Of a DNA stretch of 64,000 nucleotides, positions 9,831 to 64,000 are shown piece after piece (position 1 is the first letter of the stretch; every line of letters starts with the position of its first letter). Both the position numbers and the translations under genes were made by a program. Source of the stretch: Utricularia gibba (lineage: Eukaryota; Plantae; Magnoliophyta); assembly GCA_002189035.1 (NCBI GenBank), contig NEEC01000007.1, forward strand, positions 2,976,001-3,040,000, given 5' to 3'. The notes under the pieces are model-generated. The model was not told the DNA's origin. It made no database searches and was given only the letters and a program-made list of their open reading frames with translations.

Positions 9831-9835
9831 GGGTA

Positions 9836-10365: not shown

Positions 10366-10377
10366 TTCAGCCCCTCT
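10366..10377 (-). other. Polypurine tract
   Basis: AGAGGGGCTGAA on the minus strand immediately before the 3' LTR start (TGATAGGGG...). Confidence 0.8.
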
Positions 10378-10571
10378 GATTCGCCGATATTAGCCCTTTT
10401 CGGGGTAAATCGGGGATCAGAACTACTACAATACCGATTTTTGAGCTGCCGCTTCCCCGAATAAGCCACATGCCGTTCTCTGCCACGTCGGCTCATTGGC
10501 ATGCCACGTTTTTTCCCGCTCATTATGGGTACCTCAAACGTCACGACGCTTCGTCTCCCTAACCTTTCCCG

Positions 10572-10579
10572 TATAAATA
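10572..10579 (+). promoter_or_regulatory. Putative TATA box of the antisense accessory gene
   Basis: TATAAATA followed by a pyrimidine-rich leader and a candidate 5'UTR intron (10709-10814) before ATG 10835. Confidence 0.5.
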
Positions 10580-10834
10580 AGCACCCTTCGCGTCAGTTCT
10601 TTCTTTTGCCCTCTCTGTTGCCTGCAAGAGTTTTGTGCCCTCCGTGCTCCGTCACACTCGTCCGCCGCTCAATCTCGCGATATCCGTTGGAAACCGCCAA
10701 TTTTCCAGGTATCATTCGGTTCTTCGTCTTTTCCGTTCGGTCTTCTGGGATTTTTGACGGGTCCCCCTTGTCATTCTAAGTCCTTCCCCCTTCCTGACTC
10801 CTGCCTCGTTCTAGGGTTTTGGGCTTCTTTGAAA

Positions 10835-13071: not shown

Positions 13072-13892
13072 TGACTTTTTTTAACTTGATGTGTTTTCCC
13101 CCTTCTGTGGGGCTTCTCGAACATTTTTGATATCCCGATTTGGGATTTCCTTTTGATTTGCTCCACTTTTTTGCGTATCATTTCTGCCTTTGATGATATC
13201 ACATTTCGGGGGAAGCCCCGAGTTGGTTTGTTATGTCTATCACGTGTTTAGGCTTGGAAAGTTCGCCTACGCTTTTGTGATCCGGGGGTGGGAGTCTTTT
13301 CGCCAACCCTTTGGTTGGGTTTTTTGATTTTTGTTTGCCTTAGTATTTCTTCATGCGTGCTGAACCGTTGCTAAGGAAGTAGGTCGGAACCCCTCATGGG
13401 TTGAGCGACTTCCCCAATTTGGAAGGGCCCTCTTCTGGCCGAACCCCATTGTTTTGAACATGGGTGGATTTGCTTTGGGTGCACTTGTCGTCTCGAGATT
13501 TCGACGATAAAGTCAATACTTAAGAGCTTTTTGGGGCTTACGCGTGCGGTTTACAGGAACCAGTGCCCGAATTATACGAGGGCTTATTCTTGCCACCGAC
13601 TTATGCCTGGGTTTTGGGAGATCACATGTACATACATCGGGGGAGATCCCGAGTTGATTTGTTGTATCCCGCAGGGGGTGCCGATTTAGGGGATTTACCT
13701 GGGTTCGCGTTGCTTGGCCAGGGCTTGTGGTTTAGATCTTTAAGGGTCTGCCTGGGCTTACGCGACTCGGCCAGGGCTTATGGTTTCGTTTACTCATCTC
13801 CACTCTGGAGGAATTTACAGGCGCTTGAGTGTTTTGAGGGAGAGAATACCGGATTCTGCGCAATCCTATGATGGAGATTGTCATTGAGCCAG

Positions 13893-16800
13893 TTAGGTAT
13901 AGAATTTCCTTAGGTGTGATGCATTCCACGACCTTGAGAATTCCACGCCGTCTAATTGTTCTAGACGATACGCTCCTTTTCCGATTACCCTTGAAATCCG
14001 ATAAGGGCCTTCCCACTTGCGATCTAATTTTCCAACATGTCTCTGTGGTTGAATGCTTTGGAGCACCAAATCTCCCTCAGAGAATTCTCTTGGAGACACC
14101 GACTTGTTATATCGCTTCTCCGTTCTTCTTTGATGAGCCCCTAGTCGGCTATAGACATTTTGCCGTTTTTCTTCCAACAGCTCCAACTCCAACTTTCGTA
14201 GGTCGGCATTCTCTTTTTCGTTGTAATGCTCTACCTGATAGCTTTTCAGGGTTAGTTCGATAGGGCATATGGCTTCCGAACCGTAAACCAATAAGAATGG
14301 GGATTCTTCTGTGGTGGTTCGAGGGGTGGTGCGATATGACCACAACACTTCATCCAAGCGATCTGCCCATGATCCTCCAAAATCTTCAAGCTTAGTCTTC
14401 ATACCTAACCTGAGCGTTCGATTCGTTACCTCTGTGAGACTATTGCTCTGCGGGTGATACACTGAGGTGAAGTTGTGCTTGACCGTATATTTATCCAGGA
14501 ATTCCTCCATTTTTCCTCCAGCGAATTGGGTTCCATTATCGGTCACTAGTTCTTGAGGAATCCCGAACCGGATGAAGATATTTCTCCACAGAAATCAAAT
14601 AACGGTTTCCTCTGATATTTTTCCCACGGCTTCAACCTCCACCCATTTGGAGAAATATTCGACCGCCACGATGACAAATTTCCTTTGGCCTGAGGTTTGG
14701 GGGAACGGCCCCATAACATCCACTCCACATCTATCGAACGGGCACGAGAATGGAAGAGAAGTCAGGTTATGTACCGGCTTTCTCAGTGTACTCGCGTGGT
14801 ATTGGCATACTTTGCATTTCTTTACCATTTCGGTAATATCCCACTCCATAGTTGGCCAATAATACCCGGTTCTCAGGGCTTTCCTGCATAAGGATCGTAT
14901 TCCGACGTGGCTGCCACATTCCCCTTCGTGCAGATCGGTTATGAGTTCTTGAGAATGCTTCGCCCCGATACACCTCAAGAGGGATCCATCTAGGGATCTG
15001 CGATAGAGAATTCCATTTACCAATGTATATCTCTTTGCTCTAATCTCTAACTATCGGGCTTTGGATTTATCAGATGGTGTTTCTCCATTTCGTAGATATC
15101 GGACATAGGGCGATTTCCAATCATCGAGATGGTTCAGCTGTGGTGAGATATCATTTCCTGGTTGCTGGGTAATATAATTCACGGCTCGCAAGGTCACCGA
15201 AGGTTGATCCCGCAACCGAATCATCAACTTCCTTCCTCAGCTCATGAAACCTTGCAGAAAATCGGGCGAGGCTATCTGCGGATATGTTTTCCTCGCGCGC
15301 CACGTGCGACAGGGTGAATTCCTTGAAGGTCTTTGCTAGCTCCTTTACTTGAATATGGTAAATAGCCATGAGGGAGTCATGGGTTTCATATTCACCCGAA
15401 AACTGTCCTTGCACAAGTTGCGAATCGGTGTAGACGTTGAGCTCCGCAACTCCTAGTTCCTTGGAAATTTTCATTCCTTCGATCAAGGCTTCATATTCGG
15501 CCACATTGTTGGAGGCTGGGAATAAGAATTTCACCGTGATATAAATGTGTTCCCCATCCTGGGTTCGGATGTCTATTCCTCCTCCAGCGCCGTTGTATGT
15601 CGAGCCATCAACGTGCATGGCCCATCGATCATTGGCTTCCACAAAACGATCTATAGGTCTGGTCATTTCGACCACAAAATCGGCAAGGGGTTGGGCCTTG
15701 ATTGATGTTCTTGATTTAAACTCAATATCCATTGTACTCAATTCGACCGCCCATTTGGCAATCCTTTCGGAAATCTCTGGTCGAGATAGAATATTCTTCA
15801 GAGGCTAATTGGTGAATACCACAATGTGCCGATCTTGGAAATATGACCTCAGTTTTGTAGCCGCCATCTTTAGAGCCCAGATGGATTTTTCTGTCACTAT
15901 ATAACGGGTTTCGGCTGGTAACAGAACCTTGCTCACATAATACACCGGCAAGTATTTATCTGCCGAAATGGTTGTCAAGACCGCGCTGACTGCAACGGGC
16001 AATATAGACAGATATAGCCTTAAGGGCTCTCCTGCTTTCGGAGCCACAAGAAGCGGGGGGGGGGGGGATGAGAGATATCCCTTGAGTTTTTTGAAGGCAA
16101 TCTGGAAATCCTCGTTCCATTCTAAAGCGTTTCCCTTTCGCAAGACCTTGAAGAAGGATGCCGACTTATCAGCTGACCGAGATATGAAACGGCTGAGGGC
16201 AACCAATTTACCCGTGAGGCTCTGGTACTCCTTGATTGTCCTTAGGGGTTGCATTTCGCATATTGCCTTAATCTTCTCGGGGTCAGCCTCGATTCCCCTC
16301 TCCGATATGTAATGTCCCAGAAATTTTCCACTTCGCACCCCGAAGCAACATTTCAGTGGGTTGAGTTTTAACCCGTATGACCGGCACAGAGAGAAGCAAG
16401 AATCCAAATATGCTAAGTGGTCTTCTTCATTCATAGATTTTACGATCATGTCGTCCACATATACCTCCATTGAGGTACCAATTTTAGAAGAGAATATTTT
16501 ATTTACCAACCTTTGATAAGTCGCGCCAGCATTCTTTAAACCGAAAGGCATTGTCACATAGCAGTAAACCCCATCCTTGGTGTAGAAGGTGGTTTTCGGT
16601 TGGTCTCTCTTAGCAACGAAAATTTGATGGTATCCCGAATAGGCATCCATGGTGCTCAGGAATCGGGATTCGGCAATGGCGTCCACTAGCTTGTCAATCT
16701 TCGGCAAAGGATAAGGTTCCCTTTCGCAGCAAGCATTGAGGTCGGTGAAGTCAATGCACATCCTCCATTTTCCCCGGGCTTCGGGACGACGACTGGGTTA

Positions 16801-19332
16801 GCTACCCACTCGGAGTATTGGATCTCCTTCACATAACCAGCTTCCAAGAGCTCCCTTGTTTTTTCCTTGATAATTCGGCACTTTTCCTCTGAGAAATGCC
16901 GTTGCTTCTGCCGAACCGGTTTTGCCCCGGGTAGGTATCAATGTGGTGCTCGGCAACGGATCGATCAATGCCTACAAAGTCTGCAGCAGTCCAGGCAAAG
17001 ATATTGGCGTTCCTCATCAAAAGTTCAACTAACCTCTTCTCAAATTCCATGTCCAGATTGGCATCAATGCGGGTGGCTTTCTGCGGATCTTCTGGTACTA
17101 GTCGTACCGACTTGTGCCCTACCGGTTCCATTGCTTGTCTGGGGGGTTCTTGGGGCTCCTTTTCTACCATCATCACTCTCGGCTTTTTCGCGCAAGGATC
17201 TCGACAGGAAGATACTTAACAGGACCGGGCGGTTGGTTGGTCGATACCCATCGTGCAAATGCCTTAGGTGTCGAGAATTTAATTTTCAAATGCACAGTGG
17301 AGGGTAACATACCGAATTGGTTGATGCTAGGTCGCCCGAGGATGATGTTGTACGAGACCTCTGAATCCATGATTAAGAATTCCAACCTCTCGGTTCGGTT
17401 CCGCCCTGCCGCTCCAAACGTCACGGGCAAGGTTATTTTCCCGATAGTTTGTATAGCCCGCTGGTCAAACGCGTACAATTCCATGCGCACATGGCGGATA
17501 CTTCCCTCATTAGATGACGCCAGTAACTCGGCTACTTCCTTCTTCATGATGTTGCATGAGGATCCTTGATCGATGAGAATTCTCCTTACTTTGATGCTCC
17601 CGCATATTCCCGATACCACCAAGGGCTCATCTCTCGTGGCTGGGCCGATCAGGACGTCTCTGTCGGAGAAGCTGATCTCCTCCTTTTCCCAAGCGGCTTT
17701 TTCAATTGGACCATTCCCGATCTCGAAAATTTCTCCTCTTCTGGCTTCATCCAAATATCTCTTCCGTGCTTTTCTGGATACATCTATTTCGGTTCCTCCG
17801 GATATCATATGGATTTCCCGAATATAGGGGGACTACCTTGCATTTGATGGGCATTCCGTGAACTTTCTGGTCTGTCTTGTCCTCCGGGATTTGGTTCTCT
17901 GTTGTCTCTCGAGATCACCATTGCTAGTTTTGGGGGGAATTTCGGATATCGGTTCCCCTCATTCCTCGTTCGTTCGTTACGTCCTCTTTTCCAGTCCGTC
18001 GTTGACGTGGGGTTCCGTACCGCATTGTTTATCCCCCGCTTGCATGATATTGCTCGATCATCCTCTTCATTACTCGGCAGTCAGCAGTTTCATGCCCGGT
18101 GGTCTTGTGTATTTCGCAGTAGGCGTCCATTCTGGTTGGTTCCACCTGATACACTTCACGGCACTTATTCACCCTGGGCCCCGGTTAGGTTGGGTGTCTT
18201 GTTGCGGGATTGGGCGGAGCTCCACGCGGCCTTTCATCTCGGCTCTGAGGTCGTCGTCAACTCGGATATACTTCATGATTTTCCTTAGCAATTCTCCGAG
18301 ATCCTTTGGTGGGGACTTCGATAGACTCTGTCCCAATTTCGACGTTCCTAAGGCCCGCTTCATTATTTCCACCCTTTCCTTCAAATCCAACTGGACGTCT
18401 TGCACCAAGCAGTTGAATCGGTCGATGAATTTCCTCAAGCTTTCTCTACTGTGATCATACCGAATGGAGTACAACGCTGCCTTTGATGGTGGGGCCTCGA
18501 TGTTGACAGCATATCGGGTGGTGAAGAGTAGCACCAACTCCCGATAGGATCCCACGCTACATGGTTCTAACTGTTTGAACCAGATCTTGGCTCCCTTCTG
18601 GAGCGAGCAGGCAAACAACTTACACTTCATGGCTTCGGAGTGCTGGACCGTGGCCATCCTCATGTCGAAGTCGGTAACGTGAGATATAGGGTCTCCCTTC
18701 CCATCGTAGGTGGGCAGTCCATCGGGGACTCTGAATCCCCTTTCGGGCTCCTCTCGGATCAACTCATCGGAGAAAGGATCAAAACGAAGTGCAGGGGTCC
18801 TCGCAGTTCCTTCAACACTATTCTTCAAGGCTAGATCAATGTCGGCAAGGACATCTCCTCTTCCGGTGCGGACATTCTGGTCAAAAGCATCCCTGAAGCC
18901 CCTACTCTCTTTCTTTCCCGGTGGCGTTCGAGCGGTGATGAGCTTTCGTCTTTCCCGGATCTGATCCAATTCTCTTTTCAGCTCTTCTTCCCTTTCTTCC
19001 AAGATTTTTCCAGCCATGTTTTCCCTATCAGTTCATGGCTCATATATGACTTGGTTACGCCTCTTTCTTCGCAGCATCTCCTCCTCGGTTTCGGATTCAG
19101 TCTCCGTGTCCGGGGGGTAATCCGGAATAAGAGGTTGTTTCTCCGTTCGTGATGCAGTTTCGGGTGTTCCCTCCTGGGCTTTAGAGTTGAGGCCTAAAGG
19201 TGCCCGGAGGTCGGCGAGGATTTCCGTTAGCAGGGCTTTCAGTTGCTCCCTGCTAGTGATCATAAGGCCGAGGTCTCGCGCGTCGGCACTTCCGTCCTGA
19301 GTCGGGTTGGTGGCTGTGCTATTTTCCGCCAT
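13893..19332 (-). pseudogene. gag-pol of the Retand element (upstream ORF, gag, aspartic protease, RT, RNase H, additional archaeal-type RNase H, integrase)
   Basis: gag YDGKGDPISHV...CEIHKTTGHETADC; AP RILIDQGSSCNIM; RT WRMCIDFTDLN...MPFGLKNAGATYQRL...YVDDM; aRH HVDGS...SNNVAEYEAL; INT HEGECGSH...GVDVMGPF...TDNGTQF...NSLTEVTN...WEGPY; TAG stops at 15805-15807 and 15051-15053, plus 1-bp G/C-run frameshifts. Confidence 0.93.
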
Positions 19333-19390
19333 GACCCGTGATTAACAGGTGGTTCCTGTGGGTTTCTCGAGTGGGGCTGTGGAACGTGGT

Positions 19391-19405
19391 CCACGGTGGG
19401 CGCCA
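19391..19405 (-). other. Primer binding site complementary to the tRNA-Lys(CUU) 3' end
   Basis: TGGCGCCCACCGTGG on the minus strand, 4 nt after the 5' LTR end; matches the plant tRNA-Lys(CUU) end ...CCACGGTGGGCGCCA as recalled. Confidence 0.85.
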
Positions 19406-19409
19406 AAAA

Positions 19410-19897
19410 TGTTATGAGTGAAATTGGTATCGGGTGGGAAGCCGATTTAAGATGATAGGTGCGATCGGGAATGCCACACTTAGTCACGTTCTTCACAGTT
19501 GGTACGATTGAAATAAGAGTGAGCAAGGATTTTTTACGTGGAAACCGCCGGAAAGCGGAAAAACCACAGAGCTGTCGGAGCTCGCCGGAAAAGATCTTCA
19601 CTAGATGGAGGTCGCGAAGAGGAGAATACAAATTGAAGAAATCTTTTCTTGTCCAACCCGCTTTTTGTCGTAATTCCTTCTATTTGTCGGCTGCTTCCTA
19701 CGCCTGCTATAAGATCTCGCTTTTCAGATATCGGCCGCCTGTTATGCCGTAAGTCGGCCGCTTTTCAAACTATATCGTCTGGCTACTCCTGTCAGATTTC
19801 TGTCAGATATCGATCTGCCGACTGGCATTATCCCCTCAGGATCTCTTTTGGCAGTCTTTTAGGAACCGATTACCCTTGACCGATTTTTCCCCTATCA
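19410..19897 (-). repeat. 5' LTR of the Retand-like element (488 bp)
   Basis: TG...CA termini; matches 9836-10365 except for a 41-bp deletion and scattered substitutions. Confidence 0.95.
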
Positions 19898-46727: not shown

Positions 46728-49518
46728 TCATGGTTTATCAACATTCGTTGCTTCTGTGTGGGACGGATCAGGGGGACTGCTGCTGACAGTTGAAGCTCCG
46801 GACGTCTCCACCTCAGGAAGCTTTTCCATTGAGGCATTCATGTTTATCTTGATCCTGCATGAAGGTTTGGATGAAAGACAGCTTTTTCGAAGTGGGCCAC
46901 TTGAAAATCGAAACCTGGGGGTTTTGTCAAAAAATAGAGCCATCTTACCTGTTGTGTATATTCACATATTCATCTGTCTCATCAAGTATCTCCTCCTGGA
47001 AAGGAGAAAATCGTAGCATTGTAGTGACGGTGGTCTGGTGTATAAAAAATGGTGATGCTCTCTCTAGTAAGCGGGTACCTGAAGCAGCTCCTCGATAACA
47101 TCTTCCATTGTAATGACGCCAACCACTTCTTGATTTGGCGGAAAAACGGGGAGCGAAGAATTTTCCAGATCTAATATGCAGTGCGAACATCCCCTATGCC
47201 TTTTCTTGTAACCAGGAGTAGCATGAGCGCTTTTGTCACAAAAATCGCCTTCGTTTGAAAACAAGCCTGCATCGTGTGCAGACACGATCCCATCACCATT
47301 TTGGTTATCTGAAAAAAGGCAGGCTCATCATTGTTAAACATCAAGTAATAGATATTCAGAACCACTAAAATTATACAGATAAGATAGCAATATTAAGCAG
47401 ATGACATACTTCTGGTTTTCTGGGATCTCCCCTTCCTTTCTTTTGATTCCTTGTAAACAACCGCAATGTGACTATGGCCCTTCTGAAACTCATTGAGTAT
47501 ATCATACAGTGGCATGTCTCCGGAGACCCTTTTGATACGAAGCAATGCATGAGAAATGGGTAACAATCGCTGACCAGTTTCAAAAGGCATACCATTTGGC
47601 TACCTCACCTGGGAATTTTTCTGATGGCCATTTTTCTTAGAGGTACAGCATCCCGGGAATCAACTGCCAGTAGATTTTTAACCTGAAAAACAAGAAAGTA
47701 ATAATATTCCGTTCACATGATGAAGATAAGCACGATTACCATAAGAGAAACAACATCAACCTACCAAAATGAGACCAATAATATCATTAGGATTTCTATG
47801 GTAAACAGGAACCCTGCTGTGGCCCTTAGTCATTATTTCGTTCAATGTTTCCCTGATCAGGATGAAGATCGTTATGCAACTTGATAGAAACATGAATAGC
47901 ATGACATGTTAACAAAAATAAACTCAAAGCTCAACCCACAAATCAAGAGTTGCATCAAGGTCAAGCAAAAATGCCTTCGATATAGGTGTCATTGCATCTT
48001 TTGCAGTCTTTTCAGTTAGCTCCAGAGCCCCAGCAATAATTGTAGTTTCATCATGCGTCAAATCCCCACCCTTCCCAGCCTGCAAAGAATTGGTGATTTC
48101 CAGAGTGGTACAGTCAAATTCATGAAACAATAACATCTGAGGCTCCAAGTCAGCGCGAAGTGTATATTTCTACCTCATTGCCATGAAAATCAACAAAAGT
48201 TTTCAGCTCCGCTCTACGCAGAAGTGCAGCATGGCCTTTACCCAGCATGAAATCCAGAATCTGGAAGTGGGAAGAAATCCCAGAGACAGGGATATAAGAT
48301 AAACAAACATGAAGAACTCACAGGTTAATCTTGGAAATAAATGTGACAAGCAGCACGAAACCGACAGCCTTAATCACATGCACTAGCAACTTGAGATGGA
48401 TATATAAAAAAACACGGGTAAGATATTGTGGCATGCTGTAGATAAGTTATCTAAAAAGGCCCATTTCTTTCCGGATACCTTACTAATTGGATAAGCAACT
48501 GGATAGAATGCCCATATAAGCATACGAACAAAGGGTGCCACAGTTGCGCCGATCGCTAAACCATACCGAGTGCATAGTGCTTGTGGCATGATCTTCCAGA
48601 AGAAAAGAATGAGTTACAAAGTAAAGAGGTAATAAAATCACATGCATGCTCTGGTAGTCGCAGAAGATGGATACCTCACCAAACATGAGAATGAGAGTGA
48701 CTGAAACAACAACAGCAGCCCAAGGAGGCACGAGTGCGTCCAAAAATATAGGCAGTGACTGGAACAAGAAAAGGTAAATTCATCAGTATCTCTCTTAAAG
48801 TTGCTCATTTCAGAGCTATCACTAAAACCACAGCGATCAACTTCTAAACATTGCCTAGTTTACCCAACTAGTAACGAAATAAAATAGTTCCTTTAAATTT
48901 TTTGGAATCCACCGACCTCCATTGCCAGAGAGTTGCCAATCAACAGCGTACACAGCAGAAGATGCTGGTTCTTGACTACTGGAAGAATTTTTGCTGCCAA
49001 AGAGACAAATTTCACTTGCATGCTCTTATAAAAATCCACACTAGTAGGGTGACAGAGTAAGATTAAACCATTATCGGTCATATAAAAAGCATAAAAGCTT
49101 TTGCCCCATAAAACATAACCCGCAAAGTTTTGCCCCCAAAGATAAAAAATGTACAGGGTGGGAATAAGCGATAAGAAATGAATGAAACAATTCCTCTCGC
49201 CAAACGAATCCACATCCTCTTCCATGTCAGAACTGAATACAATTGGTTTGTCCCATAAACCCCAGAAAGCCATCCAGCCGGGTCCAAACAAAACTCAAGA
49301 TAAAGCAATCAAAAAGAAAGAGAGTATACAGTACAGGCATGAACACGATCTTTAGGGCGACCCGATTTGCTAAGTACTTCAAGCTCAACAAGACCAAGAG
49401 ACATCAGTCCCAGAGTCAAACCCGCCATAAGCCCAGCAAACGCCACCAGCCCCACAATCACAAGCAGGAACAGAAAGAATTTGCTGTGACAACACGGCAC
49501 ATCTTGATGATTCGCCAT
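46728..49518 (-). CDS. CNNM/DUF21 transmembrane plus CBS-domain protein (At1g47330-like)
   Basis: [113 protein letters not shown]. Confidence 0.93.
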
Positions 49519-49952: not shown

Positions 49953-52041
49953 ATGGGTCTGGGTTATCATCAAAACATCAACCACCAATCTGATGGTGAC
50001 GCCGCCGCCGTCGTAGCCCCGCTCGTCATCGGGCTGCAGCCGGCGGCGATGGTCGACCATGTTGCCAGAGTTGGTCGATCCCTTTTGTCCCGAATTCCCG
50101 GCGAACCCGGTGGCTCTTTTCCAGTATATTATTCCCCCTTATCTATTCTATCTGTATCTTGAATAGGGGTTACTCATATGCTGGTTTCTTTCGTTCGTTT
50201 TGGGTATCTCCCTTTAGTGTAAAGCTGCAATTTTTAGCCCTCGGTTGTTGCTTATGCAGTATATTATTCCCCCTTATCTATTCAACTCGATGTTAATCTT
50301 TGCAGGTTGATGCCAAGGAGCTGAAGTTCATTTTGGACGAAGTTGTCAATTCACATAAGTTTGATTCTCCAAATGGCACTGCCTCATTGAAGACAGTAGC
50401 TGGTGGGAGTATAGCAAATACGATCAGAGGCCTTGCGGCGGGTTTTGGTATCAGTTGTGGGATAATTGGAGCTTATGGCGATGATGATGAAGGAAGTCTT
50501 TTCGTAGATAATATGAATTCCTATAACATTGATTCCTCCAAATTGAGACCCAAAAAAGGGCCTACGTCACAGGTTAGATCTTTCCATTTCTGTCTATGCC
50601 CAAGGATACAGTGGTTAAATGATTCAACGTTGATGCAGTGTGTTTGCTTAGTTGATGAAGTGGGAAACAGAACAATGCGACCGTGTCTCCTAGGCACCGT
50701 GAAAGTTCAGGTAAATGTATTCTTGATGCGTCAGATTTCATGCTGATGCTCATTTTAGATGGAACATTGAAAAATTTCAAAGCTTTTCTATCTTTAAAGT
50801 TAATGCATCTCTTAACGTTATGTCTTACCAGGCAAATGATCTGACTGCTGCTGACTTCAAAGGCTCCAAGGTGAAGTATAACCGAAATATGACTTCCCTT
50901 TTAGAATTCAAATTCTTAGTTTTTGCATCTCTTGATTGGTGTTGTTTAGAGACAGACCATATCGACTGCAATATTGTTCACCATGATCATTAATGTGCAA
51001 ATCCTTGGCGTCCATGAATGATACTGGATGAATTGATATATGTGCTATGCTTATAAAATGAAGCGTTTTAGTAGGAAGTCGAAATGCTTTTTGAGATGGT
51101 TGCAAGCGAATCTGGAGGGTGTTTGAGAGTGGGTGCAATTTTTTTGACTATTCCTTCTAATCAGAAAATTGCCAACATGTTTCTGATGGTGTTACAGTGG
51201 CTAATGATGAGATATGCCATACTAAATATGGAAGTTATCCAGACTGCTATTAAGCTGGCAAAGCAAGAGGGTCTTCTGGTCTCGCTAGATCTTGCCAGCT
51301 TTGAGGTAGCATTTCACTGAATCTGTATGGGATTCCGCTGAAATAGGATTTGGATGTTTTGCCTTTTGCAAAATGTGTTCTTTCCCTCCACAGATGGTAA
51401 GGAAGTTCAGGTTGCCTCTTCTAGAATTACTAGAATCTGGAACAATAGACCTCTGCTTTGCTAATGAAGATGAAGCTGCAGAACTTCTGAGGTGATGTTC
51501 TCATTTGTCGGTCCATTGTCATCTTTCAAGCAGCATCAGTTGTTGATCTATTATTTTTCCAAATAGCAGGGATGAAGACAACACAGATCCAGAATCCGCC
51601 CTCAACTTTCTGGCCAAGCACTGCCGATGGGCGGTGGTTACATTAGGCTCAAGGGGATGCATAGCTAAGAGTGGAGATGAGGTTTCTTTACCTTTTGTTT
51701 GTCCCATTGCTTTCTCCATAGCATGTCCTCATTAACCTATTGCACAGGTTGCCTGCGTCCCTTCCGTCCATACAAATGCCATTGATGCGACTGGTGCAGG
51801 TGACCTGTTTGCCAGTGGCTTCTTGTATGGACTCTTGAAGGGGTTGACACTGGAGGAGTGCTGTATGATTGGTTCGTGTAGTGGCGGATGTGTGGTCCGT
51901 TCTCTTGGAGGTGAGGTTCCACCGGAGAGCTGGTGGTGGATGTATCAGCAGATGCAGAGCAAGGGATATCATTTGCCTAAACCATTGAAGCCGTGCCACA
52001 AGGACGACGGTAGTTTTCATCTGGTTCATGTTTCTGAATGA
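49953..52041 (+). CDS. pfkB-family carbohydrate kinase (At1g19600-like)
   Basis: PLVIGLQPAAMVDHVA, AGGSIANTIRGL, CVCLVDEVGNRTMRPCL, SLDLASFE, FANEDEA, VVTLGSRGC, DATGAGDLFASGFLYG (pfkB signature). Confidence 0.92.
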
Positions 52042-52577
52042 TGGGTCGGACCTGTCATCAGAAATATTGTTTGCTTTTTTCAAACTCATTTGTATGGCTG
52101 ACTGATTCGACTCAGTGGCCGCACCATTGAATTGAAACCCATCTCGTTTTGATTATTGTGTTGGTTCTAACATGCTGACCAAGTCGAGAAATAGCGATGT
52201 TTTGCGATGTCATGACCACTGGATGTTTGGTCTGGGAATCATCCGTCTTACCTTGGAATCGTTCCCAGCTTTTGGTTGATGCTGATCAAGTCGAGAAAGT
52301 TGGGTAGAAATTTAGTCCGCGCACTCATGGAAATTCCAGTCCTCAAGGGAGATTGTTCTTCCCAACTAAGAAGAAATCTGGCAAAGTGAGGAAGGAGCAG
52401 CAGCCTCTTTTGTTCTTCATTGCTGCTACTCGACGATCGACAAGGGAATCAAGCTTTTGGTTCTACGAACTTGTTGTCTCTGAAGAATGAGGTCGTTTGC
52501 ACACTGAATTTGCCAGTTTCTTATGCATTCTTTGCACACCATGTGACTGACTGTTGAATGGTGGGAGAGGACTCTAG

Positions 52578-55119
52578 TGATGGTCTGTTCTCTATTCGTG
52601 AGATGAGACAGTCACATCAACCTCACAACACATTTAATTAGATCTTAAACATGTGCTTAGATTGGAGTCTATTATAAGACTGTTAATGGGTTGCTTGTTG
52701 AAGGGCTTGATTTGGCAAGAACTCAACATTAACAGTCCATATCCATTAGCGACCTCTTTCTCTTTCTTACAATGTGATATAGGCAGACTACATGGGGCGG
52801 GCCCATAGGTTTCAAGCCCAAGTCCACGAAATTTAGTGTTTCCCTTCGGAATTCAAGTATTCCTCTATCGTCCTTGGCTCCAGACTCCGGCTGAGTGCGG
52901 GCCAAAAGCAAGGTCAACTCTAAGCTTGATTACTTGGTGTTTCAGGTTGGAGGTGAGGTTTAAAGCTTGTTTTTACTACGTGCGACACAGATTCCTAAGT
53001 TTTGAAGCTTGTGGAGGCTCGTCGACACTGCACAAAGAGTCTCGGTGTTGCGTCATGTTTGTCTTACTCTATTTTATCCTTTGTTCCTACTGGAGTTGTA
53101 ATGGGGGCACCACAATCATTGCTGAATATTTGCCCTAGTGGAACGCTTTGTTTTAAAAATCAGTCGATGTGAATCGGTTTCAACCGTCCGTTTACATCAT
53201 CTTGTCGCTAGAAGGAGGGCCACAGCCATGTCTTGAGGTGGACAGGGAGGTCGAGGATTTGATAATGAGTCGTACAGGTGAGATAGGCGAGACCTTGTGA
53301 TTGATGAACGCCTTGATGCTCTTGAATTGAAAATGGAGCAACTATTGACATCGATGGATGTCCTGCTCGATCAAGGATCAAGAGCCACCCCTAAGCAAGA
53401 TCACTCGGGAACCTCTTCAACAGGGGGATTTGAGCATAGATTTATTGAACGAAATGGGCAAATGGGGGTGGATAGGTGTTGGGGATCGAGGATGCGAATT
53501 GATGTTCCGAAATTTCACGATAGCCTACAAGCGGAAGAGTTCTTAGACTGGATAACTACAATGGAGGCTGTGTTTGAGTACAAACAAGTTTTGGAGGATT
53601 TTCGTGTTCCCCTGGTGGTAACATGGCTTCGTGGTCGTGCAGCTTCTTGATGGGAGCAACTGAAGCTCACCTGCAATCAAATGGGAAAACCCAAGATTAA
53701 ATCCTAGGAAAAAGATGAAGAAGCAAATGCGTCTAAAATTTTTTCCCTATAATTTCCAAAAAGTCATGTTCCAGAAGTTATCTAGCTTGCGTCAGGGTTC
53801 TAAATCGGTGGAGGAGCATGCAGATGGCTTTACTTGCATGTTGTCCCGTATTGAGCTACAAGAGGATGAAGAACAATTGGTGGGGTGCTATTTAGCATCA
53901 CTCCGTTCGAGTATTCAGGATGAACTAAATATGTATGATCCCATGAGTGTGGATGAGGCCTTCCAACGAGTTTTGCTAATAGAACATCGAGCACGACGGG
54001 AAACTTTGACTCCTACTGGCATGACTCCCCCATTCCCTGGACTCAACTGTCTGAAACCTCGTGTGAACCTATTACAACCTGAGAGCTGCTCTAGTCACGT
54101 TGTTACTGATCGTATAAAAAGTCAGATTGTAAAAAAAAATATGGAAAGAGAGTGATGATGGCTGACAAGAATGATGAGTCTGAGGAAGATGACCCCTTAC
54201 CAGTTGGTTCAGAGAACTCTACTAGAGAGGGGGAGGAATGGGTTCAAGGCGACCCCATATCGTATTTAATGCTTCAGCGGGTTTTTCTTAGCCCAATTTA
54301 GGAGGATAAACATCAATGTCTCAGGAAAAATATATTCCAATCCTATTGTACAATTCAAGGAAAGGTTTGCAAGTTCGTAATTGATAGTGGGAGTTTCGAT
54401 AATTTTGTTTCAGAAGAAGTTATCAACAAATTGCTGATTCCTACAGAACCATTACCAGTTATCACGATTTGAGAAAAAAGAGTTTGTAAATGTAGAAAAA
54501 AGGGCACTGATCAATTTTTCTGTGGAAAAAATTACAAGGACTCCATTTGGTGTGATGTGGTTCGTGTGGACATGTGTCATTTACTCTTGGGTCGGATGTG
54601 GCAATTCGATCGAAAAGTCTTTCACTCCGGACACAAGAACACCTACATGTTTTGGTTTAACCAAGTAAAGATTGTCCTATTACTGTCAAAACCAGCATCC
54701 GAGGGGACTCCGCTAAGGGTTTTAGCCAGCTGTCAGCTTGACAACTAGAAGAGGAATTGATAGCAAGTAATGATATTATCTTACTTAGGATGGCCTCTAT
54801 AACTACATCTAAACACACTCTAGAAGTGGAAGAGCTATTAAAAGAGTTTGACTCAGTCTTCCCTCTAGAGCTACCAGATGGGTTACCCCCATTTCGTGAG
54901 ATTCAACACCAAATCAATCTGCTATCAAGAGCCTCCCTTCCTAACCGGCCACATTGCTGGATGACCCTTGCTAAGCATGAAGTGGAAGAATTATTACACA
55001 AGGGTCATGTTCATGAGAGTCTAAGCCCATGTGCGGTTCTCAACATCTTAGTTCCTAAAAAGGATGGATCCTGACGGATGTGCATGGATAGTAGGATCAT
55101 CAACAAGATTACGTTAAGG
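52578..55119 (+). mobile_element. 3'-truncated degenerate Ty3/gypsy element, CRM-like (putative LTR, gag, protease, start of RT)
   Basis: IDVPKFHDSLQAEEFLDW...VPLVVTWLRGRAAS*W; LRQGSKSVEEH; KVCKFVIDSGSFDNFVS; CHLLLGRMWQFDRKV; LVPKKDGS*RMCMDSRIINKIT, ending at 55119. LTR boundaries approximate. Confidence 0.8.
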
Positions 55120-55544
55120 TAGAGGTGGAATTGTGGAACCGACGGTTCCGACCCGTGTGTGAACTGTACTGTTCACGGTTCCGACCTGTGAACCGTGCGA
55201 TTCGGATTTAAAAATAAAAAACAATTTAAAAAAAATTAGAAAAAATTAAAAACAATTAAAAAAAATTTTTATACTTTTCTCAGGCACGCATACGAAGGAA
55301 GTGGATGACTAAAAAATCTTCTCAAACACTAATGGGGTATAAATCAATTTTCGCCCTTAACAAAGACCCATTCCCAAACACACCCACGACAGATGTGGGT
55401 GCCTGAAAAATGGTCTCAGATACCCTCACGACACACTCTCTTAAATTACATACACTTATTTTTCATCTTCTTGATTTCTTTTGTTCACAAATGACAATAT
55501 ACATCCATGGCTTTTGAGATTGAGTATTCATTGTCCTCCTTGAA

Positions 55545-55810: not shown

Positions 55811-56593
55811 ATTACTAATTTCGAATGTTGCGTTAATATAAAATAATTCAATATATAAATTTAAATACATAAATCAAAGTTTATGTTGAACTGTGTTTTT
55901 TGTTGTAAAATAGGTTAATAAAACAAAAATTAATAATAAAAAAATTCCAATTTATGTGATTATTCGAGAATGAAATATATGTTTTATATTATTTACATAA
56001 AAATAAATTATTAAATTTTGATGGAGACATATATTAAGCTCACTTGTTTATTGAACTATAACTCAATAGATTTATATGCTAAAACAGAATAACAATAATT
56101 CACAAAATATTTTAACATTTCATTATCTATATATTTTTCTCAATAACTAGTTATGCATTGCCAAGATAACTAATGTATCTATATTGGTAACGCAATGTAT
56201 ATTTAAACATAAGTATATATTTAAAATACTAATGTAAAGACTGCTATGGCAGCATCATATCTAAAATTTTTATTTAAAATATATTTGTTATCTATATGTT
56301 TATCTCAACGGCTAGTTTATGCATTTGTGATTGTGCAGACTGTGGAGTTGCACATGGTTTTGAAAGTAACCATTGCTATTACTTTTATTAATAAAATTTG
56401 TCTATATATATATGATATGGTTATTTTATAATTTTCCACTACTTTCTCTTATTGTCTCATTACTCAGTACTAGAAATAATTCTATTTCAACTTCTACGTG
56501 ATTGGAGGTACTCTCAAGTGTCAAGTTTCAGATTTCCACTTGGACGACATTGATGAAGCCTGCAGAGTAATAGGTTTTTTTATTTTTTACAGA

Positions 56594-58674
56594 ATGGAGG
56601 GGTCTGGTTTGCGAAATTCTTCTCAAGCTTCTCAAGCTAATTCTACTATACCTTGTGTTTTTGAAAATAATAGAGAATTTTCTTTTGGGGAAGACCTTCA
56701 ATTTTTACAAGAGCTTGAATATGGTCCTTTACCCGAACAAGATGATTTTTCTAGTCCTCAAGAAGAGGGTTCTTCCACCTCATCTAGTCTCCTTTGTCGT
56801 AAAAGATCGAAAAACACTAATAATGATTCTCTGGATATTCGAGAACATTTTGTTTTTTGTAATCCCGAAAAAATTTCTTGCAAACATTATGGTAAAGAGT
56901 ACACTTTCAAAAAGGGGTTGGGGAAGCGGTACATATAAGACGCATGTTAGAGAGAAGTATAATGATAAATTACGTCAGTTTCTTCAAACTAGATTATGTT
57001 TAGAGGGTGACAATAGTGTGAGATTATCTAATTTTGTTTTTAATTATAAACTTTTTCAAGTGTGGTGCATTATTTGATACTTAATGAACTTACTTTTTCA
57101 TTAGTTGAAAAACCTTCTTTTAATGATATGTTGAAACAAGCTCAACCAGGATACAAAAATTTTTTTAGGAAAACCGCACATCATATGGCACTTGAGGATT
57201 TTAAAAATATATGTGACTATTTAATTTTTATTTTTAAGTCTCTACATTGTAATTTTTGTTTGACTTGTGATGGTTGGAAAGGTTGTAACAATGAGAGTTA
57301 TATTGTTATTACATGTTCTTGGGTAGATAATTCTTGGTGTATGCAAAAACGAATTTTAGCTTTTCAAGAATGGCTATCATCACATAATGGTTTTTCTATT
57401 GCTAAAATCATTGAAAAGGTCACAGTATTTCATGGAATATCTGATAGGATTTTTTTCTATTTCTTTGGATAATACCTCTACAAATACAAATACTATAGAC
57501 ATTTTGAAAAGTAACATGAATCCTATATTAAATAACATTTTTTCCACACTAGGTGCACTTGTCATATATTAAATTTGTGTGTTCAAAATGATTTGAAAGA
57601 ATGTGAAATTTTTTTAACTCCTATTCATGATTTAATTAGTATGATTAGAACTACCTCTAATAGAAAAGATGATTTTAAAAGGATTTGTCAAGAAACGAAC
57701 ATCTCTTATCGTAAATTTAAAAGTGATTGTCCAAATAGATGGAATTCTACATATGACATGTTACAATTTTTTATTCCTTATGAATATGTTCTTATTGAAT
57801 TTTGTAAATCTGTCACGGTTTATAATTTCTTGACTCATTTGTATTTTTGAAAAAATAAGAGGTTTAGTAAATTTATTAGAAATATTTTATTCTTATACTA
57901 AGATTTTGAGTTGTATTTACTATCCAACTTCTCAACTTGTGCTTTCATGTATTTGTAAAATTTCGTTTGCTTTTTATGACCATCAAAGTGATTGTGATTT
58001 TTTGGGAGACGTAGTACGAAATATGAAAAATAATTTTTTGAAATATTTTGATGTCCCACATTTGTTTCTTATTGCATTTATTTTGGATCCCCGGGTTAAG
58101 TCTAAAGGTATGAAAACATTACTTGAATGTATTTCAGAATCATTTATTGTAGATGATGTTGGTTTTTCCATTAAAAATTGTGAAGAAATAGATGTTGATG
58201 GCAATAATGTTCTACATGTCATGTATTCCCTTTATGCTTCTAAAATAGTGATCTTAGTGTTCCTATTCCTAAAGCATGTAACAATTCGACATTTGGTAGT
58301 CACAATCCAATGGACATTATTCGTAGGAAACATAGTTCATTTTTGTCCTCCTCTTCATCATCTTCATTAAACTCTATTGATCAAATTACATTTTACAATA
58401 ATACTCCTATTGTTGAGGATGTTGATGATGACAACTTTGATATATTTGGTTGGTGGAAGACAAATTCTACTACTTACCCTATCTTGGCTAAAATGACCAA
58501 AGATCTTCTAACATCTTCAGCATCTACAATGGCATCCGAAAGTGCATTTAGTGCAGGGGATTAGTTTTTAATCACAACCGCTCCAAATTGAATATAGAGA
58601 CCCTGGAGGCATGCATTTGTCTAAAGGATTGGTTGGAGGCTGTGAAATCAAACCTTATCCTCAAGTTCAAGTGA
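56594..58674 (+). pseudogene. hAT transposase (BED finger, RNase H-like core, hATC dimerisation domain; RICESLEEPER/DAYSLEEPER-like), broken by +/-1 shifts
   Basis: IREHF...SCKHYGKEY, LTCDGW, KRILAF, HTRCTCHILNLCVQ, CPNRWNSTYDML, YYPTS, FILDPRVK, DIFGWWK...YPILAKMTKDLL...ASESAFSAG...RSKL..ETLEACICLKDW. Confidence 0.9.
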
Positions 58675-58810
58675 AGATGAAGTTGAAGACTCCTAATTTG
58701 GAAACATTTAGTGCTCCATGAAATAATATTACTTTGTAAGAAAATGTTGTATTCATGTTTTTAATTAAAAGTGGGTGCCTGGAATTTGATCGCAAACTCG
58801 CAAACATCCT

Positions 58811-59345
58811 CCCGAGGCACCCACATGAAGGAAGAGGGTGTCTGGAAAACTGTCTCAAATACTTCTTTCCAGGTACCCATATAAGAGAAGTGAGTGCCTA
58901 GAAATCACTCTTCTCAGACACCCACACAATGCATTATTTTGTAGGTGCCATCCAACTCTTTTTCCTGGACACCCTCCCTAGGCACCCACATGAGGGAAGA
59001 GTGTGTCTGGAAAACTGTCTCAAATACTTCTTCCTAGACACCTCTATAAAAGAAGTGGGTGTCTGGAAATCACTCTTCCTAGACACCCACACAATGCATT
59101 ATTTTGTAGGTGCTGTCCAACTCTTTTTCTTGGACATTCTCTCGAGGCACCCACATGAGGGAAGAGGGTATCTGGAACACTATCTCAAATACTCCTTCTC
59201 ATACACCCATATAAGAGTTGTAGGTGCTTCGAAATGGCCTTATCCACTCTTTCCAGACACCCACACAACGCATTCGGGGTGCCTGGAAAAAGATATCTGA
59301 CTCTCTTTCCAGACACCCACACGAGGCAATGTGGGTGTCTAGAAA
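58811..59345. repeat. Tandem array of 165-bp units built from short inverted motif pairs (AG(G/A)CACCCAC ... GTGGGTG(T/C)CT)
   Basis: AGGCACCCACATGA starts at 58815, 58980 and 59145 (exact 165-bp spacing); partial units follow to about 59345. Confidence 0.9.
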
Positions 59346-60051
59346 ATAGTCTAAGCGATAGACGAATATTCTTTATTTATTGAAATTAATTTGTAATAAT
59401 TAGGATATATAAAATCATTTCATTTTCAAATTTTTATATTCCAATTAATGCAACAACAAATTTTTATATTTATGAAAATTAAGAATACTTTCAAAGATTG
59501 CGCAATTTCCAAATTTCGGGTACGGGTGCCTAATTTTGCATTTCTTGTGCCACTCACCCACATTAGCGATTCTAGGTGCCTCAAAATTAGAGTATTAATT
59601 ACACGATGGGCTCGCATCGATTCAAACGAGCAGCGCACACCTTGTGTGAAAACAACGAAAGCTATTACCGACAACCTACGAAAGTAGGGATATCATTGCG
59701 CGTAATCATTAGCTTATGATTTGGTGTATTAAACCAAATCCCCACGCACCCATACACAGCGCTATACATCACCACCCCACTCCCCACTTTACCCACTCCC
59801 TATGTTGTCAATTAAACCAACCCTAATCCCCACCCATTTGGTAAGAAAATTTTCTTACCTCTTTCCCCCTCCCCCAGCCGAAAGTGACCGGACGCCCCCA
59901 CAGTCCCATCACCTACTTGGAGTGTTCTTTAAGTTAAATAAGGTAAGTGATTTATTTTCCACCATGGGTTGCTGATCTATGTTCCAAATTGTTATACCTT
60001 GTTGAATTATTGTAGTTTGAATTTTTATACAATTCCTATGGGTGTTTGTAG

Positions 60052-61995
60052 ATGCACACTTCTGAAAAATTGAGAACTAGATTCTTGATACCGTATGAAT
60101 ATGAGGTTTGGGACAAAGAACCGGATGAGTTGATTGAGAGTGAAATTCCAAACCGTGTGGGTCCAATGGGATTTTCCTTAAGCATGGAACATTTTCGCTG
60201 TGGTTTGCGCTTACCATTATTGCCCTTTTTAGAAGAAATATTAGAATGTTTAAAGATTCATTTATCTCATTTGACTCCAAGATCTATCTCATATGTGTTG
60301 GCCTTTGTTAGTATTTGTGAGGACTTATGTCTTGAGGTGGAACTTCGCTATTTTTTTGCTGTGAGTGTATGTTCTATGACTCTAAATAAGAACCACTACA
60401 CCCTAAAGGGGAAAAAAGGGTGGTACTAGTGAAGGATGTAAGAAGAGGATTTGAAGAATGGTGGACAAGTTTTGTTTGGATATGTACTCCAATGGAAACC
60501 AAATTTCTTCAAATTTATACTAATTCGAACGAAGTAGGCAAGGCGAAAGGTAAATCTTGCTTTGTATTATTAGAAGAAATATGAATAAAAATATTCCATA
60601 TTTTTATTGAAGGTATTATGATTGAGTGTTTTTTTTAATCTACTCTTATTAAAACTATTGTTATTGAATATTTTTATTCAATACCCTTTTTGAATATTTT
60701 TACACTTATCATGTTGAATATTCTTATTCAATAATTTTGTTGAATATATTGTTAATAAATTTACTTTTACTGTAGGATTTGATACCTTGTCCAAGAGGGA
60801 TATACAAAATCTTATTCTCCTCTTCTCAAGTATGCAAAAGAGTTTTGTTGACATTTTACCACCATTTGTGGATGCACTGGGGACAAAACGCTATTGGTGT
60901 GGTGTGTTAAAGAATCCTAGAGTCTCCCAAAAAAATGAAGACTTGTCAAGGAATGAAAGGAGACAAGATGGGAATGATGTTGAAGGGGACGAGCTCATAC
61001 ATGGTCTCGATGATGTCGATGACATACTTGAATTTATAACAAAAGAGAATGAAGAGCTTCGCTACACGTTGGATTGGTATGAGAGTCGTTGGGCATATAC
61101 CGGACCTCCTTTTAGTGCCTCTGAGCCTCAACGAAAGCTGATTATCTTGGATGTAAATGATGAGCTAGCAAACATCGTTTACAGGACTGGAGCGTCAAGG
61201 TCACGAATCCCTCCAGATAAAATCATATATGGCCGATCAGGTATGTTAACACAATACTTATTTTTGTGTGTTATATGCATTCACGATTTATGAGATATCA
61301 TAGGTATCTTTTGGTGCAAATTATGCAGTCTTTCTACGTCCACATGCCCGCGATTTTATTAGGTGGTGTTTGGATAATTTTGATGTAGCCTTGTGGTCAT
61401 ACCGTGGGGGGTACGTGTGTTGCATCTCTTTTTTTTTTTGTTGGTATTTATAATTGGTGCAAACACTTGCAAGTGATTTATTTTGTAGGGAGCAACTACA
61501 AGCAATCACTAAATGGGTATTTCCACCTTCGTTATTCGACAAACTCATTTTCGTATGGGACCAAACCATGACAACGGACACTGGCGTATGTGTTCACAAC
61601 AATCCTAGCAACACGGTTTACATGAAGGAGTTGAATCGTGTATGGGCTGTCAACAATGGATTGAACACAAGATATGACCGTCACAATACCTTATTAATTG
61701 ATGATTCACCTCACAATACACGGTTTACATAATATACTCTTGCATACACTTGGTTATACATCAAAACTAACCCTTCAATTTTTAGGAAAATAATGATATT
61801 TTTCCAAGTCCCTATTCGCATACTAATAGGGATGATGCATCACTCAATGTTGATGGTGAGATGCGGACTTTCCTTGAAGGGTTACGGTATGCTAATGATG
61901 TTCCAAGTTATGTTAATGAGAATCGAATAGGACAGCCTCCCATACGTGAGTGACATGCCTTATGGGAGTATTATGCATGCCTATATGATTGTTAG
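60052..61995 (+). pseudogene. Spliced chimeric gene: TRP28/Transposase_28-like domain plus FCP1/NIF (HAD-superfamily) phosphatase-like domain. Exons about 60052-60549, 60776-61240, 61329-61410, 61489-about 61730, 61786-61995
   Basis: LRTRFLIP...FRCGLRLPLLPFL...HLTPRSI...WWTSFVWI; then KLIILDVNDEL, VFLRPHARDFIRWCLDNFDVALWS, LIFVWDQ, MKELNRVW, NTLLIDDSP, IFP.PY...GEMRTFLEGL...IGQPPI; first three introns phase-compatible; frameshift at about 60427, stop at 61951. Confidence 0.72.
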
Positions 61996-62181
61996 AAGGA
62001 GCCTCTTATTTCTAAAGAGCCGTCCCATTTATTTTCAATTAGATAGACACTTACGAAATGTCACATTTTGATTATGCCATTGAATTTATTTTAAAATAAA
62101 TGAAAAAATTAATGACAATACCTACAAAACAACTTATTTATACTGTATGGCGCTTATTTTGATTTTTTAAATTAATTTACT

Positions 62182-63440
62182 GGAACGGCACATACATAAA
62201 AATGTTTCTTATGGATGTAGGGGCCGCCAAAATATTGAAATACTATTAAATTTGCTTACAGATGTGAATTGTTTATTAAACGATTTCCCATTACAATTGG
62301 CATCCATATTTTAAAAAATATTTTTTCGTACATAATTATTTTAAATAATTTTATGTTATAACATAGAATTATAAGTGTGTTGTTGACATACAATCACATT
62401 TTAACTTAAAACATTTTTAGCAAAAATATGATACGAATGTAGGTTCTTGTCTAACTTAACCTCAGATGTTGCGAGGTTTAGTAGAGAAAAATATTTGAGA
62501 TACAATATACATATACTTGTGTGAAAAAACTTCATTTTTATAATCCTACCTTAAATATTCAACGCATTACAACATTTATGTTGATAAACGTCATTAACAA
62601 GGACCATTTATATTAAAAAAACATAAATTTCCACTTCGTAGTTTAGGGTTTTCAGGGTTTTAGGTTTAGGGTAAATAAAATATCTGAAATATTCACGCAT
62701 TTTTAATATGTTGCAAATGTGAAATTTTGGACGGCACATACGTAACATTGCGTTTTGTAGGGGCGGTAAAAACAATTTATGGAAACACTCTCAAATGTAT
62801 TTACGGATGAGAATTGTTTATTAAATAATTTACAATTCAAATTGACGTCCATTAGATACAAAATATTTTTTGTATCGAATTTCTATTTAAAAAAACTGAT
62901 TCAAAAACCTTAAATTACAAATGTATAATTGAAAGGCAATATAATGACATTAAAGTTTATAAATAATCATCCACATTTACATTAGATACTAATGTATCTT
63001 GTTCTATAATTTAAATGTCAAATATTATGATGCTTTATAAAAAAAATATTGAACATATATTTACAAAGAAACGTGGTTTTTATTATTTTTAACGTTACAA
63101 TATTGGTGATGATAAACTTCATTACTATGAACAAAAACTATTAAAATTTTTAATGTGTAGTTTAATTAAGGGTTTAGGACAATTAAATGTGTAATAAATT
63201 CTCGTCATTTTTTTAAAAAAATGTAAGAATAGTTGGATTTTGAGAAGGTACATTCAAACACACGTAATGCGTAGGTGTCGCTGAAATATATCCACAACCT
63301 TTTTCATTTATCATTTTTAAAATACTAAAAATTTGAAATTTGGGACGGCAAATTAAACAATGAGTTATCTGGATTTAGACTATATATGGATGTGAATAAT
63401 TCTATGTAATATGATTTTCTGAAAAAGTTGGCGTCCATTA
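62182..63440. repeat. Three highly degenerate dispersed repeat units (spacing about 547 and 614 bp)
   Basis: GG(A)ACGGCA at 62182, 62729 and 63343, each followed by a (C/G)GGATG..AAT motif and TTG(G/A)C(G/A)TCCAT at 62297, 62842 and 63428. Confidence 0.55.
62640..62672. repeat. Short degenerate telomere-like/telo-box cluster
   Basis: GTTTAGGGTTTTCAGGGTTTTAGGTTTAGGG. Confidence 0.6.
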
Positions 63441-63789
63441 TATAAGTGTACAACTCTACCTAGTTTACATCATCTTTTGCTGCATACAAAGACTCTTCTT
63501 ATCAGTGTCGTCGCGCTCCTGAAAACCCAGAATTCGTCGGCTTAAAATCGGGTAATCTTGTTGTTGAAACTTACATTATTTTTGTGAAATGTATTCTATG
63601 CATTTGTTGGTGCAGTATGCCTTATATATTAAGTTGGGTTTAGTTATTAAAAATTGTCTTTTCATATAATTATGTATTTAGTTGGGTTTAGCTGTGTTTT
63701 TCATCGTTAATATCATGTTTGTTTTGCTGTTTTCCATTTCCTTATTTTTAGAATTTCATTCTTATTATGTATCCTTTATTGATTAGGGA

Positions 63790-64000
63790 ATGGATAGATT
63801 TCGTGTTAAATATTTCATCCCAACCGATTGGTTGACAATTCCTGCTCTGCAAAACACACCTCTTGATGCCAATCCCCCTCATGAACATCCCAATGCTTGG
63901 CTTGTGTCTCGTAAAACATTTGATGCTGGTCTTAGGCTACCTATCCATCCCTTTGTTGTTGATGTGCTCACCTACTTGAGATTGCCTATTGGGTTTTTAG
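63790..64000 (+). CDS. Second TRP28/Transposase_28-like gene, runs off the window end
   Basis: After acceptor AG (63785-63786): MDRFRVKYFIPTDW...TFDAGLRLPIHPFVVDVLTYLRLP, open to 64000; upstream donor at 63552. Confidence 0.7.
   Translation, partial: MDRFRVKYFIPTDWLTIPALQNTPLDANPPHEHPNAWLVSRKTFDAGLRLPIHPFVVDVLTYLRLPIGFL

Follow-up and report, generated by a model that had tools for sequence, protein, structure and literature searches.

Between positions 60052 and 61995 on the forward strand of the 64-kb window (the whole stretch of Utricularia gibba DNA analysed here, 64,000 nucleotides) lies what is left of a gene, which we refer to as TRP28-NIF; its coding part is divided into five exons, and its GT-AG introns are AT-rich. 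The ancestral product was a protein of about 500 amino acids in which an acidic linker separated an N-terminal TRP28 domain from a C-terminal HAD domain of the NIF/FCP1-like type. The peptide motifs and feature positions given in a first-pass annotation of this DNA were all found in the exons and frames named there, and the phase-1 GT-AG intron that it had placed between the TRP28 exon and the linker with LIILDVNDEL was seen as well, with both parts in one spliced reading frame. The GC content is 40% in the exons and 19-31% in the introns, and the three intact introns are all of the GT-AG type; such a contrast between exons and introns is usual for plant genes. The linker encoded by exon 2 is about 118 amino acids long and carries 23 acidic residues (D+E) versus 14 basic ones (K+R). 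A decayed hAT transposase gene is located 1.5 kb upstream on the same strand. The coordinates of the gene and of the features around it are collected in Table 1.

Table 1. Features of the TRP28-NIF locus and of related sequences in the window
Feature	Position	Strand	Remarks
Retand-type LTR element	LTRs near 9835-10301 and 19409-19834		Antisense ORF matches PF04195
hAT-like terminus	55120-55139	+	TAGAGGTGG...; read from sequence; unique in window
Decayed hAT transposase gene	56480-58564	+	PF14372 38.4 bits, PF05699 54.3 bits; five or more open stretches
(G/A)CACCCACA motif array	58771-59338	.	Includes 2.5 copies of a 165-bp tandem repeat; spacer between transposase and fusion gene
Putative 5'UTR intron	59943-60051	+	AAG/GTAAGT ... 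TTTGTAG/ATG; directly precedes start codon; read from sequence
Coding exon 1	60052-60549	+	TRP28/Transposase_28 domain; FRCGLRLPLLPF, then WWTSFVWI after the frame break
Intron 1	60550-60775	+	GT-AG, phase 1, 226 nt, 19% GC
Coding exon 2	60776-61240	+	Acidic linker, then LIILDVNDEL
HAD motif I, D-V-N-D-E	61150-61164	+	Exon 2
Intron 2	61241-61328	+	GT-AG, 88 nt, phase 1
Coding exon 3	61329-61410	+	FLRPHARDFIRWC...VALWS; HAD motif II Ser at 61397-61399
Intron 3	61411-61488	+	GT-AG, 78 nt, phase 2
Coding exon 4	61489-61729	+	FVWDQ, YMKELNRVW, LLIDDSP
HAD motif III Lys	61625-61627	+	Exon 4
HAD motif IV Asp-Asp	61700-61705	+	Exon 4
Coding exon 5	61786-61995	+	IFPSPY...GEMRTFLEGL; family stop codon TAG at 61993-61995
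Departure from family	62006-62007	.	Loose ends in 8 + 2 contigs, agreement 0.97
Start of second, divergent TRP28-like gene	63790-64000	+	tblastn E 4.5e-5; extends past window end

Exon 1 matches the Pfam profile PF04195 with 41.5 bits (E 1.6e-10; profile positions 4-61 of 69), which is above the gathering cut-off of 26.2 bits, and PF04195 is present in 73 of the 100 clusters that neighbour the exon in a language-model comparison (Atlas; score 0.96). In BLASTP comparisons with the Retand antisense ORF at 10940-11659, both halves of the exon gave colinear alignments in which the spacing was similar, the E values being 4e-5 for the GLxxPLxP block and 7e-7 for the WW(S/T)SFVWI block. Taken together, the profile score and the colinear alignment bear out the earlier claim that exon 1 encodes the same domain as the Retand antisense gene. 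TRP28 is the hallmark antisense domain of Retand elements; it has no known function and is predicted to bind DNA (PMC11963269). Residues G51, P55, P58, L64 and L74 are common to exon 1 and the window's two other TRP28 sequences (three sequences compared), and the P-N pair reported for Retand TRP28 (PMC11963269) reads P-R in exon 1. The AlphaFold2 prediction for exon 1, obtained with a three-sequence alignment, had a pLDDT of 44. The second TRP28-like gene, of which the window holds the start, shows 24% identity over 70 amino acids, and its piece at the window edge scores 22.6 bits against PF04195.

The C-terminal half was compared with the NIF profile (PF03031; gathering score 21.8 bits) exon by exon. 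NIF is the sole Pfam match of exon 3 (12.4 bits, profile positions 39-60) and also of exon 4 (13.3 bits, profile positions 88-122). The matches of the two exons are colinear and lend some support to the assignment to PF03031 that had been proposed, but each piece, scored singly, stays below the cut-off. The LIILDVNDEL sequence of exon 2 is found at the spacing expected for motif I, and, given that one exon points to NIF, the chance of the second exon matching the same one of 24736 families at the score obtained is about 3e-6 (0.067/24736). Among the Atlas neighbours, NIF clusters account for 91 of 100 in the case of exon 4 (top score 0.92, 190 shared features) and for 66 of 100 in the case of exon 2 (score 0.70), the latter being a weak lead.

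As regards the HAD motifs of the FCP1/NIF type, motifs II to IV were found in order, as the first-pass annotation had described, but motif I is not DxDx. The earlier reading of DVND as DxDx(T/V) is out of register, and the motif in register is D-V-N-D-E, that is, DxNx. Residues were assigned to motifs from the sequence by the established HAD pattern, according to which the nucleophile Asp, the Ser of motif II (VALWS), the Lys of motif III (YMKEL) and the Asp-Asp pair of motif IV (LLIDDSP) are kept, while the general acid/base Asp of motif I is replaced by Asn, giving DxNxE in the window copy and DxNxV in the family. Loss of the general acid/base Asp in HAD enzymes normally abolishes or cripples turnover. 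With this replacement, the NIF-like domain is likelier to be a pseudo- or atypical phosphatase than a standard enzyme. Nearly all other copies have V as the fifth residue of motif I (61163) and KELS instead of KELN, and the family is therefore nearer to canonical NIF proteins than is the window copy.

When exon 2 was compared exhaustively by phmmer with 1.84 billion representatives, no true homologue was found, the sole match being a spurious one to a bacterial repeat protein. No relatives were returned by word-index searches with either exon 4 or exon 1, scans of metagenomes for relatives gave no match, and the same was true of NCBIfam and of a phmmer search of the PDB with exon 4; in an exact-match look-up of three ORFs, none was on record. 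Searches of the literature revealed no published description of a TRP28-NIF gene or of a transposon-borne NIF-type gene, and for TRP28 itself they led only to the Retand paper (PMC11963269), in agreement with the earlier view that the fusion had not been described.

The TRP28-NIF unit is a high-copy repeat. When contigs of two DNA runs from the same species (X6 and X1) were aligned at ≥80% to positions 58200-64000, 2130 contigs of X6 and 297 of X1 were placed, each site being covered by 17-42 distinct contigs and the identities ranging from <90% to >99%. In this comparison, C>T and G>A changes exceeded their reverses 2.4-fold, as expected for a methylated repeat. These contigs bear on the possibility that the TRP28 exon is a fragment unrelated to the NIF-like exons and that the splice between the two is imaginary, a reading with which the lack of any transcript seen would be in keeping. 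Since the unit recurs many times in the DNA of the species, however, the juxtaposition of the two domains is not due to chance. Furthermore, intron 1 is AT-rich and is bounded by a good donor and a good acceptor that agree in phase, the depth is continuous over the whole unit, and contigs of other copies run from exon 1 into intron 1, one of them bridging this intron with a 151-nt internal deletion. Chance juxtaposition, which the first-pass annotation had itself raised as an objection, was therefore not borne out, and we consider it very improbable.

The copy in the window is dead and makes no protein. Exon 1 contains a frame break at 60420-60429, with an in-frame TAG at 60427-60429, and at least 7 of about 28 contigs from other copies have one extra base at 60420 and are still in frame. 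As only these at least 7 are demonstrably free of the break, it may be common to a subfamily. The end of exon 4 and its donor are lost at 61717-61732, where a TAA is found at 61730; eight contigs from other copies diverge from the window after 61716 and reach a GGTAAGT donor. Exon 5 is interrupted by a premature TGA at 61951-61953. In 35 contigs of X6 (about 92% of the depth) and in 5 of 5 contigs of X1, this position is occupied by a sense codon, and the frame is then open to 61993-61995. The frameshift near 60427, the damaged donor near 61730 and the stop at 61951 on which the earlier claim of decay was based are therefore all real, and for each of them there are other copies without the lesion. 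Just past the gene, the window copy departs from the family; the sequence that other copies share after 62006 is absent from the window at up to 3 mismatches, and contig depth falls 3- to 5-fold past 62080. Nine exon differences separate the window copy from nearly all others, seven of them replacement or nonsense changes and one silent, the ninth (61589) being present in only part of the copies. The private differences shift the window copy away from the NIF consensus, and the proportion of seven replacement or nonsense changes to one silent change is consistent with neutral decay after insertion.

The state of this copy is one of several observations that could be explained by the main rival to the interpretation that we favour below, namely that the gene is passive chimeric cargo. 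According to this reading, a TRP28 exon and a fragment of a host NIF-like gene were captured by a DNA transposon in a Pack-MULE-like manner, the chimera was amplified although it never served the element, and every copy is a pseudogene in decay. The four lesions of the dead window copy, a frame break that is possibly subfamily-wide, the missing general acid/base Asp and a linker without an annotated protein relative among 1.84 billion representatives would all fit such a history, but in the ancestor of the copies the splice sites and phases were intact and a frame of about 500 codons was open, the sense codon at 61951 is kept in nearly all copies, the consensus of the family is nearer to the NIF motifs than is the window copy, and only one of the five key HAD residues has been replaced. 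Expression data add to the case for passive cargo in that no RNA match was found: none of the RNA contigs of runs X11 and X12 matched any part at ≥80%, such contigs showing presence rather than absence, and no RNA run was among those listed as containing the sequence, which is a weak negative. Overall, we regard passive cargo as a serious but rather unlikely explanation.

With respect to the host element, a gypsy gag-RT reading frame (53297-55119) ends exactly at 55119/55120, where the hAT-like terminus starts. A right terminus that matches it, a repeat of the flanking 8 bases and a resumption of the RT were all looked for from this point to 64000, and none of them was found. Since the gypsy RT never resumes before 64000, the transposase and the TRP28-NIF gene belong to a single inserted block, which is at least 8.9 kb long. 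Around the gene there is no LTR pair and there are no pol sequences, its neighbours being the hAT transposase and AT-rich repeats. The spacer between the transposase and the gene is itself repeated, with a depth about half that of the exons. An apparent inverted repeat between 56200-56282 and 62306-62365 was rejected as an AT-rich chance similarity. All 9 matches to the (G/A)CACCCACA motif in the window fall into two clusters, one at 58817-59330 in the spacer and a smaller one that precedes the transposase (55394, within 55381-55401). These clusters resemble subterminal repeats, and a hAT end could be located near 59400-59870, before the gene. The earlier proposal of a transposon-borne fusion is thus supported to the extent that the gene adjoins a hAT transposase within one inserted block, but neither a right terminus nor a target-site duplication was found. 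As the window lacks the right end, the gene is no more than probable cargo of a hAT-type DNA transposon, and we put the likelihood of this assignment at a little over one half.

If the gene were not carried by a transposon at all, it could belong to a host gene family of many copies, with transposons as mere neighbours in a repeat-rich region. It would then be unsurprising that the element ends are not closed in the window, that the gene apparently has its own promoter region and 5'UTR intron and that the motif arrays suggest that the hAT might stop short of it. However, the existence of tens of copies that have diverged and show a mutation bias of the methylation type argues against a transposon-independent host family, as do the repetition of the flanking spacer and of the transposase at a depth of similar order and the gypsy RT, which is cut at 55120 and not resumed past the transposase. 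Moreover, no such protein was found in annotated proteomes, and we consider a host gene family to be improbable.

We interpret the window copy as a dead member of a high-copy gene family, probably the cargo of a hAT element, whose product would have been a transposon accessory factor, and we hold this interpretation to be moderately likely. In such a role, TRP28, a predicted DNA binder (PMC11963269), would bring the protein to the DNA or chromatin of the element, where the NIF-like domain would bind a protein phosphorylated on Ser/Thr, for instance the CTD of Pol II or another tail of this kind. The bound phosphoprotein would be held, or dephosphorylated only slowly, and the outcome would be that transcription or silencing is shifted in favour of the element. 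It is conceivable, although we advance this only tentatively and would not expect it to be the case, that the combination of TRP28 with a substrate-trap-like DxNxV domain constituted a shared, once-selected gene of plant cut-and-paste transposons, which acted at Pol II or the silencing machinery as a regulator of a new class and moved between superfamilies.

Accessory genes are rare in plant DNA transposons, and the few that have been studied, for instance VANC, revealed escape from silencing. Should the TRP28-NIF family be functional, the presence of TRP28 in a spliced gene next to a DNA transposase, together with a NIF-like domain that has relatives acting on the tail of Pol II, would provide a testable idea of the role of TRP28, and retrotransposons and DNA transposons would be seen to exchange accessory domains. 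From the Asn in motif I, binding without turnover is predicted. TRP28-NIF is of interest as a family; the window copy by itself is ordinary, and what it adds is the link to hAT.

Several known systems can be compared with TRP28-NIF. Its HAD motifs I-IV are ordered and spaced as in the small CTD phosphatases of the SCP1/FCP1/NIF family (PF03031), from which it differs in having DxNx instead of DxDx(T/V) as motif I and in Pfam scores that are below threshold for each piece. To our knowledge, neither a fusion with TRP28 nor an association with transposons is known for that family. Other plant DNA transposons carry non-transposase genes, namely VANC of the VANDAL MULEs, which has an anti-silencing function, the ULP1-type genes of KI-MULEs and the Myb-like ORF of PIF/Harbinger elements. 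None of these accessory genes is related in sequence to TRP28-NIF, and we know of no accessory gene of this kind in hAT elements.

The antisense TRP28 gene of Retand elements (PMC11963269), present in the window at about 10940-12800, has the N-terminal domain in common with TRP28-NIF, the motifs FxxGLxxPLxP ... WW(S/T)SFVWI being colinear in the two, but their identity is only about 33% over 42 amino acids. In contrast to the Retand gene, TRP28-NIF is spliced, has no LTR element around it and does not run antisense to gag-pol. No similarity was found between its linker and the Retand gene, and the C-terminal halves are different, the Retand gene having a coiled-coil tail and TRP28-NIF a NIF-like HAD domain after the acidic linker. 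The nearest published parallel is provided by proteins with a plant mobile domain (PMD), which occurs in MULEs and gypsy elements as well as in host genes; in MAIL3, a Ser/Thr phosphatase domain has been added to it (PMC5418596). Like TRP28, the PMD of MAIN/MAIL1 and MAIL3 (PMC5418596) is thus a domain of both gypsy elements and DNA transposons that has in one case been joined to a phosphatase-type domain. TRP28 is not a PMD, however, and the phosphatase part of TRP28-NIF is of the HAD/NIF type rather than the PPP type. Furthermore, MAIL3 is a host gene, whereas TRP28-NIF is a repeated and decayed gene of an element.

A second gene resembling TRP28 lies downstream of the fusion gene (the decayed TRP28 and NIF/FCP1-like HAD gene, 60052-61995, + strand), and its translated product is 24% identical over 70 amino acids to that of fusion-gene exon 1. 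The Pfam profile for TRP28 (PF04195, Transposase_28) scores 22.6 bits on this piece, which is truncated by the window end, and a possible 5'UTR intron precedes it at about 63553-63751. With the fusion gene and this gene at 63790, there are therefore two TRP28 genes in tandem within 4 kb. In the AT-rich stretch separating them, a direct repeat of roughly 100 to 150 nt occurs three times (62180-63430; for example, 62228-62326 and 62773-62871 are 76% alike), and this stretch is also repeated in Utricularia gibba DNA, at lower depth. A perfect 20-nt palindrome, GGTAAGAAAATTTTCTTACC (59840-59859), is located about 85 bp upstream of the donor of the fusion gene's putative 5'UTR intron.

Features located in the window
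Feature	Position	Strand	Basis
Retand-type LTR retrotransposon	9835-19834		
Gypsy-type element fragment	53297-55119	+	gag PF03732 and RT start
(G/A)CACCCACA motif clusters	55381-55401 and 58771-59338		
Second TRP28-like gene, divergent	63790-64000, continues past window end	+	exon 1 comparison, Pfam

All nine (G/A)CACCCACA motifs in the 64-kb window fall within two clusters on either side of the decayed hAT transposase gene (56480-58564, + strand), and a tandem repeat with a 165-bp unit, present in 2.5 copies (58804-59214), forms part of the right one. These motifs may be binding sites for the hAT transposase or, more speculatively, for TRP28. Farther upstream, the gypsy-type fragment ends at 55119, truncated by the hAT-like terminus.

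The LTR pairs of the Retand-type element are 95% and 91% alike, and its antisense gene lies on the + strand. The TRP28 part of that gene, at about 10940-11660, is broken by a stop; its other part, at 12373-12801, is a coiled coil. Two further regions look like ordinary host genes. At 47900-49300 (- strand), exons read like those of a CBS/DUF21-type membrane protein, with no Pfam match in the two pieces searched; the other, at 50300-52100 (+ strand), contains a pfkB-family kinase exon (PF00294, 27.5 bits).
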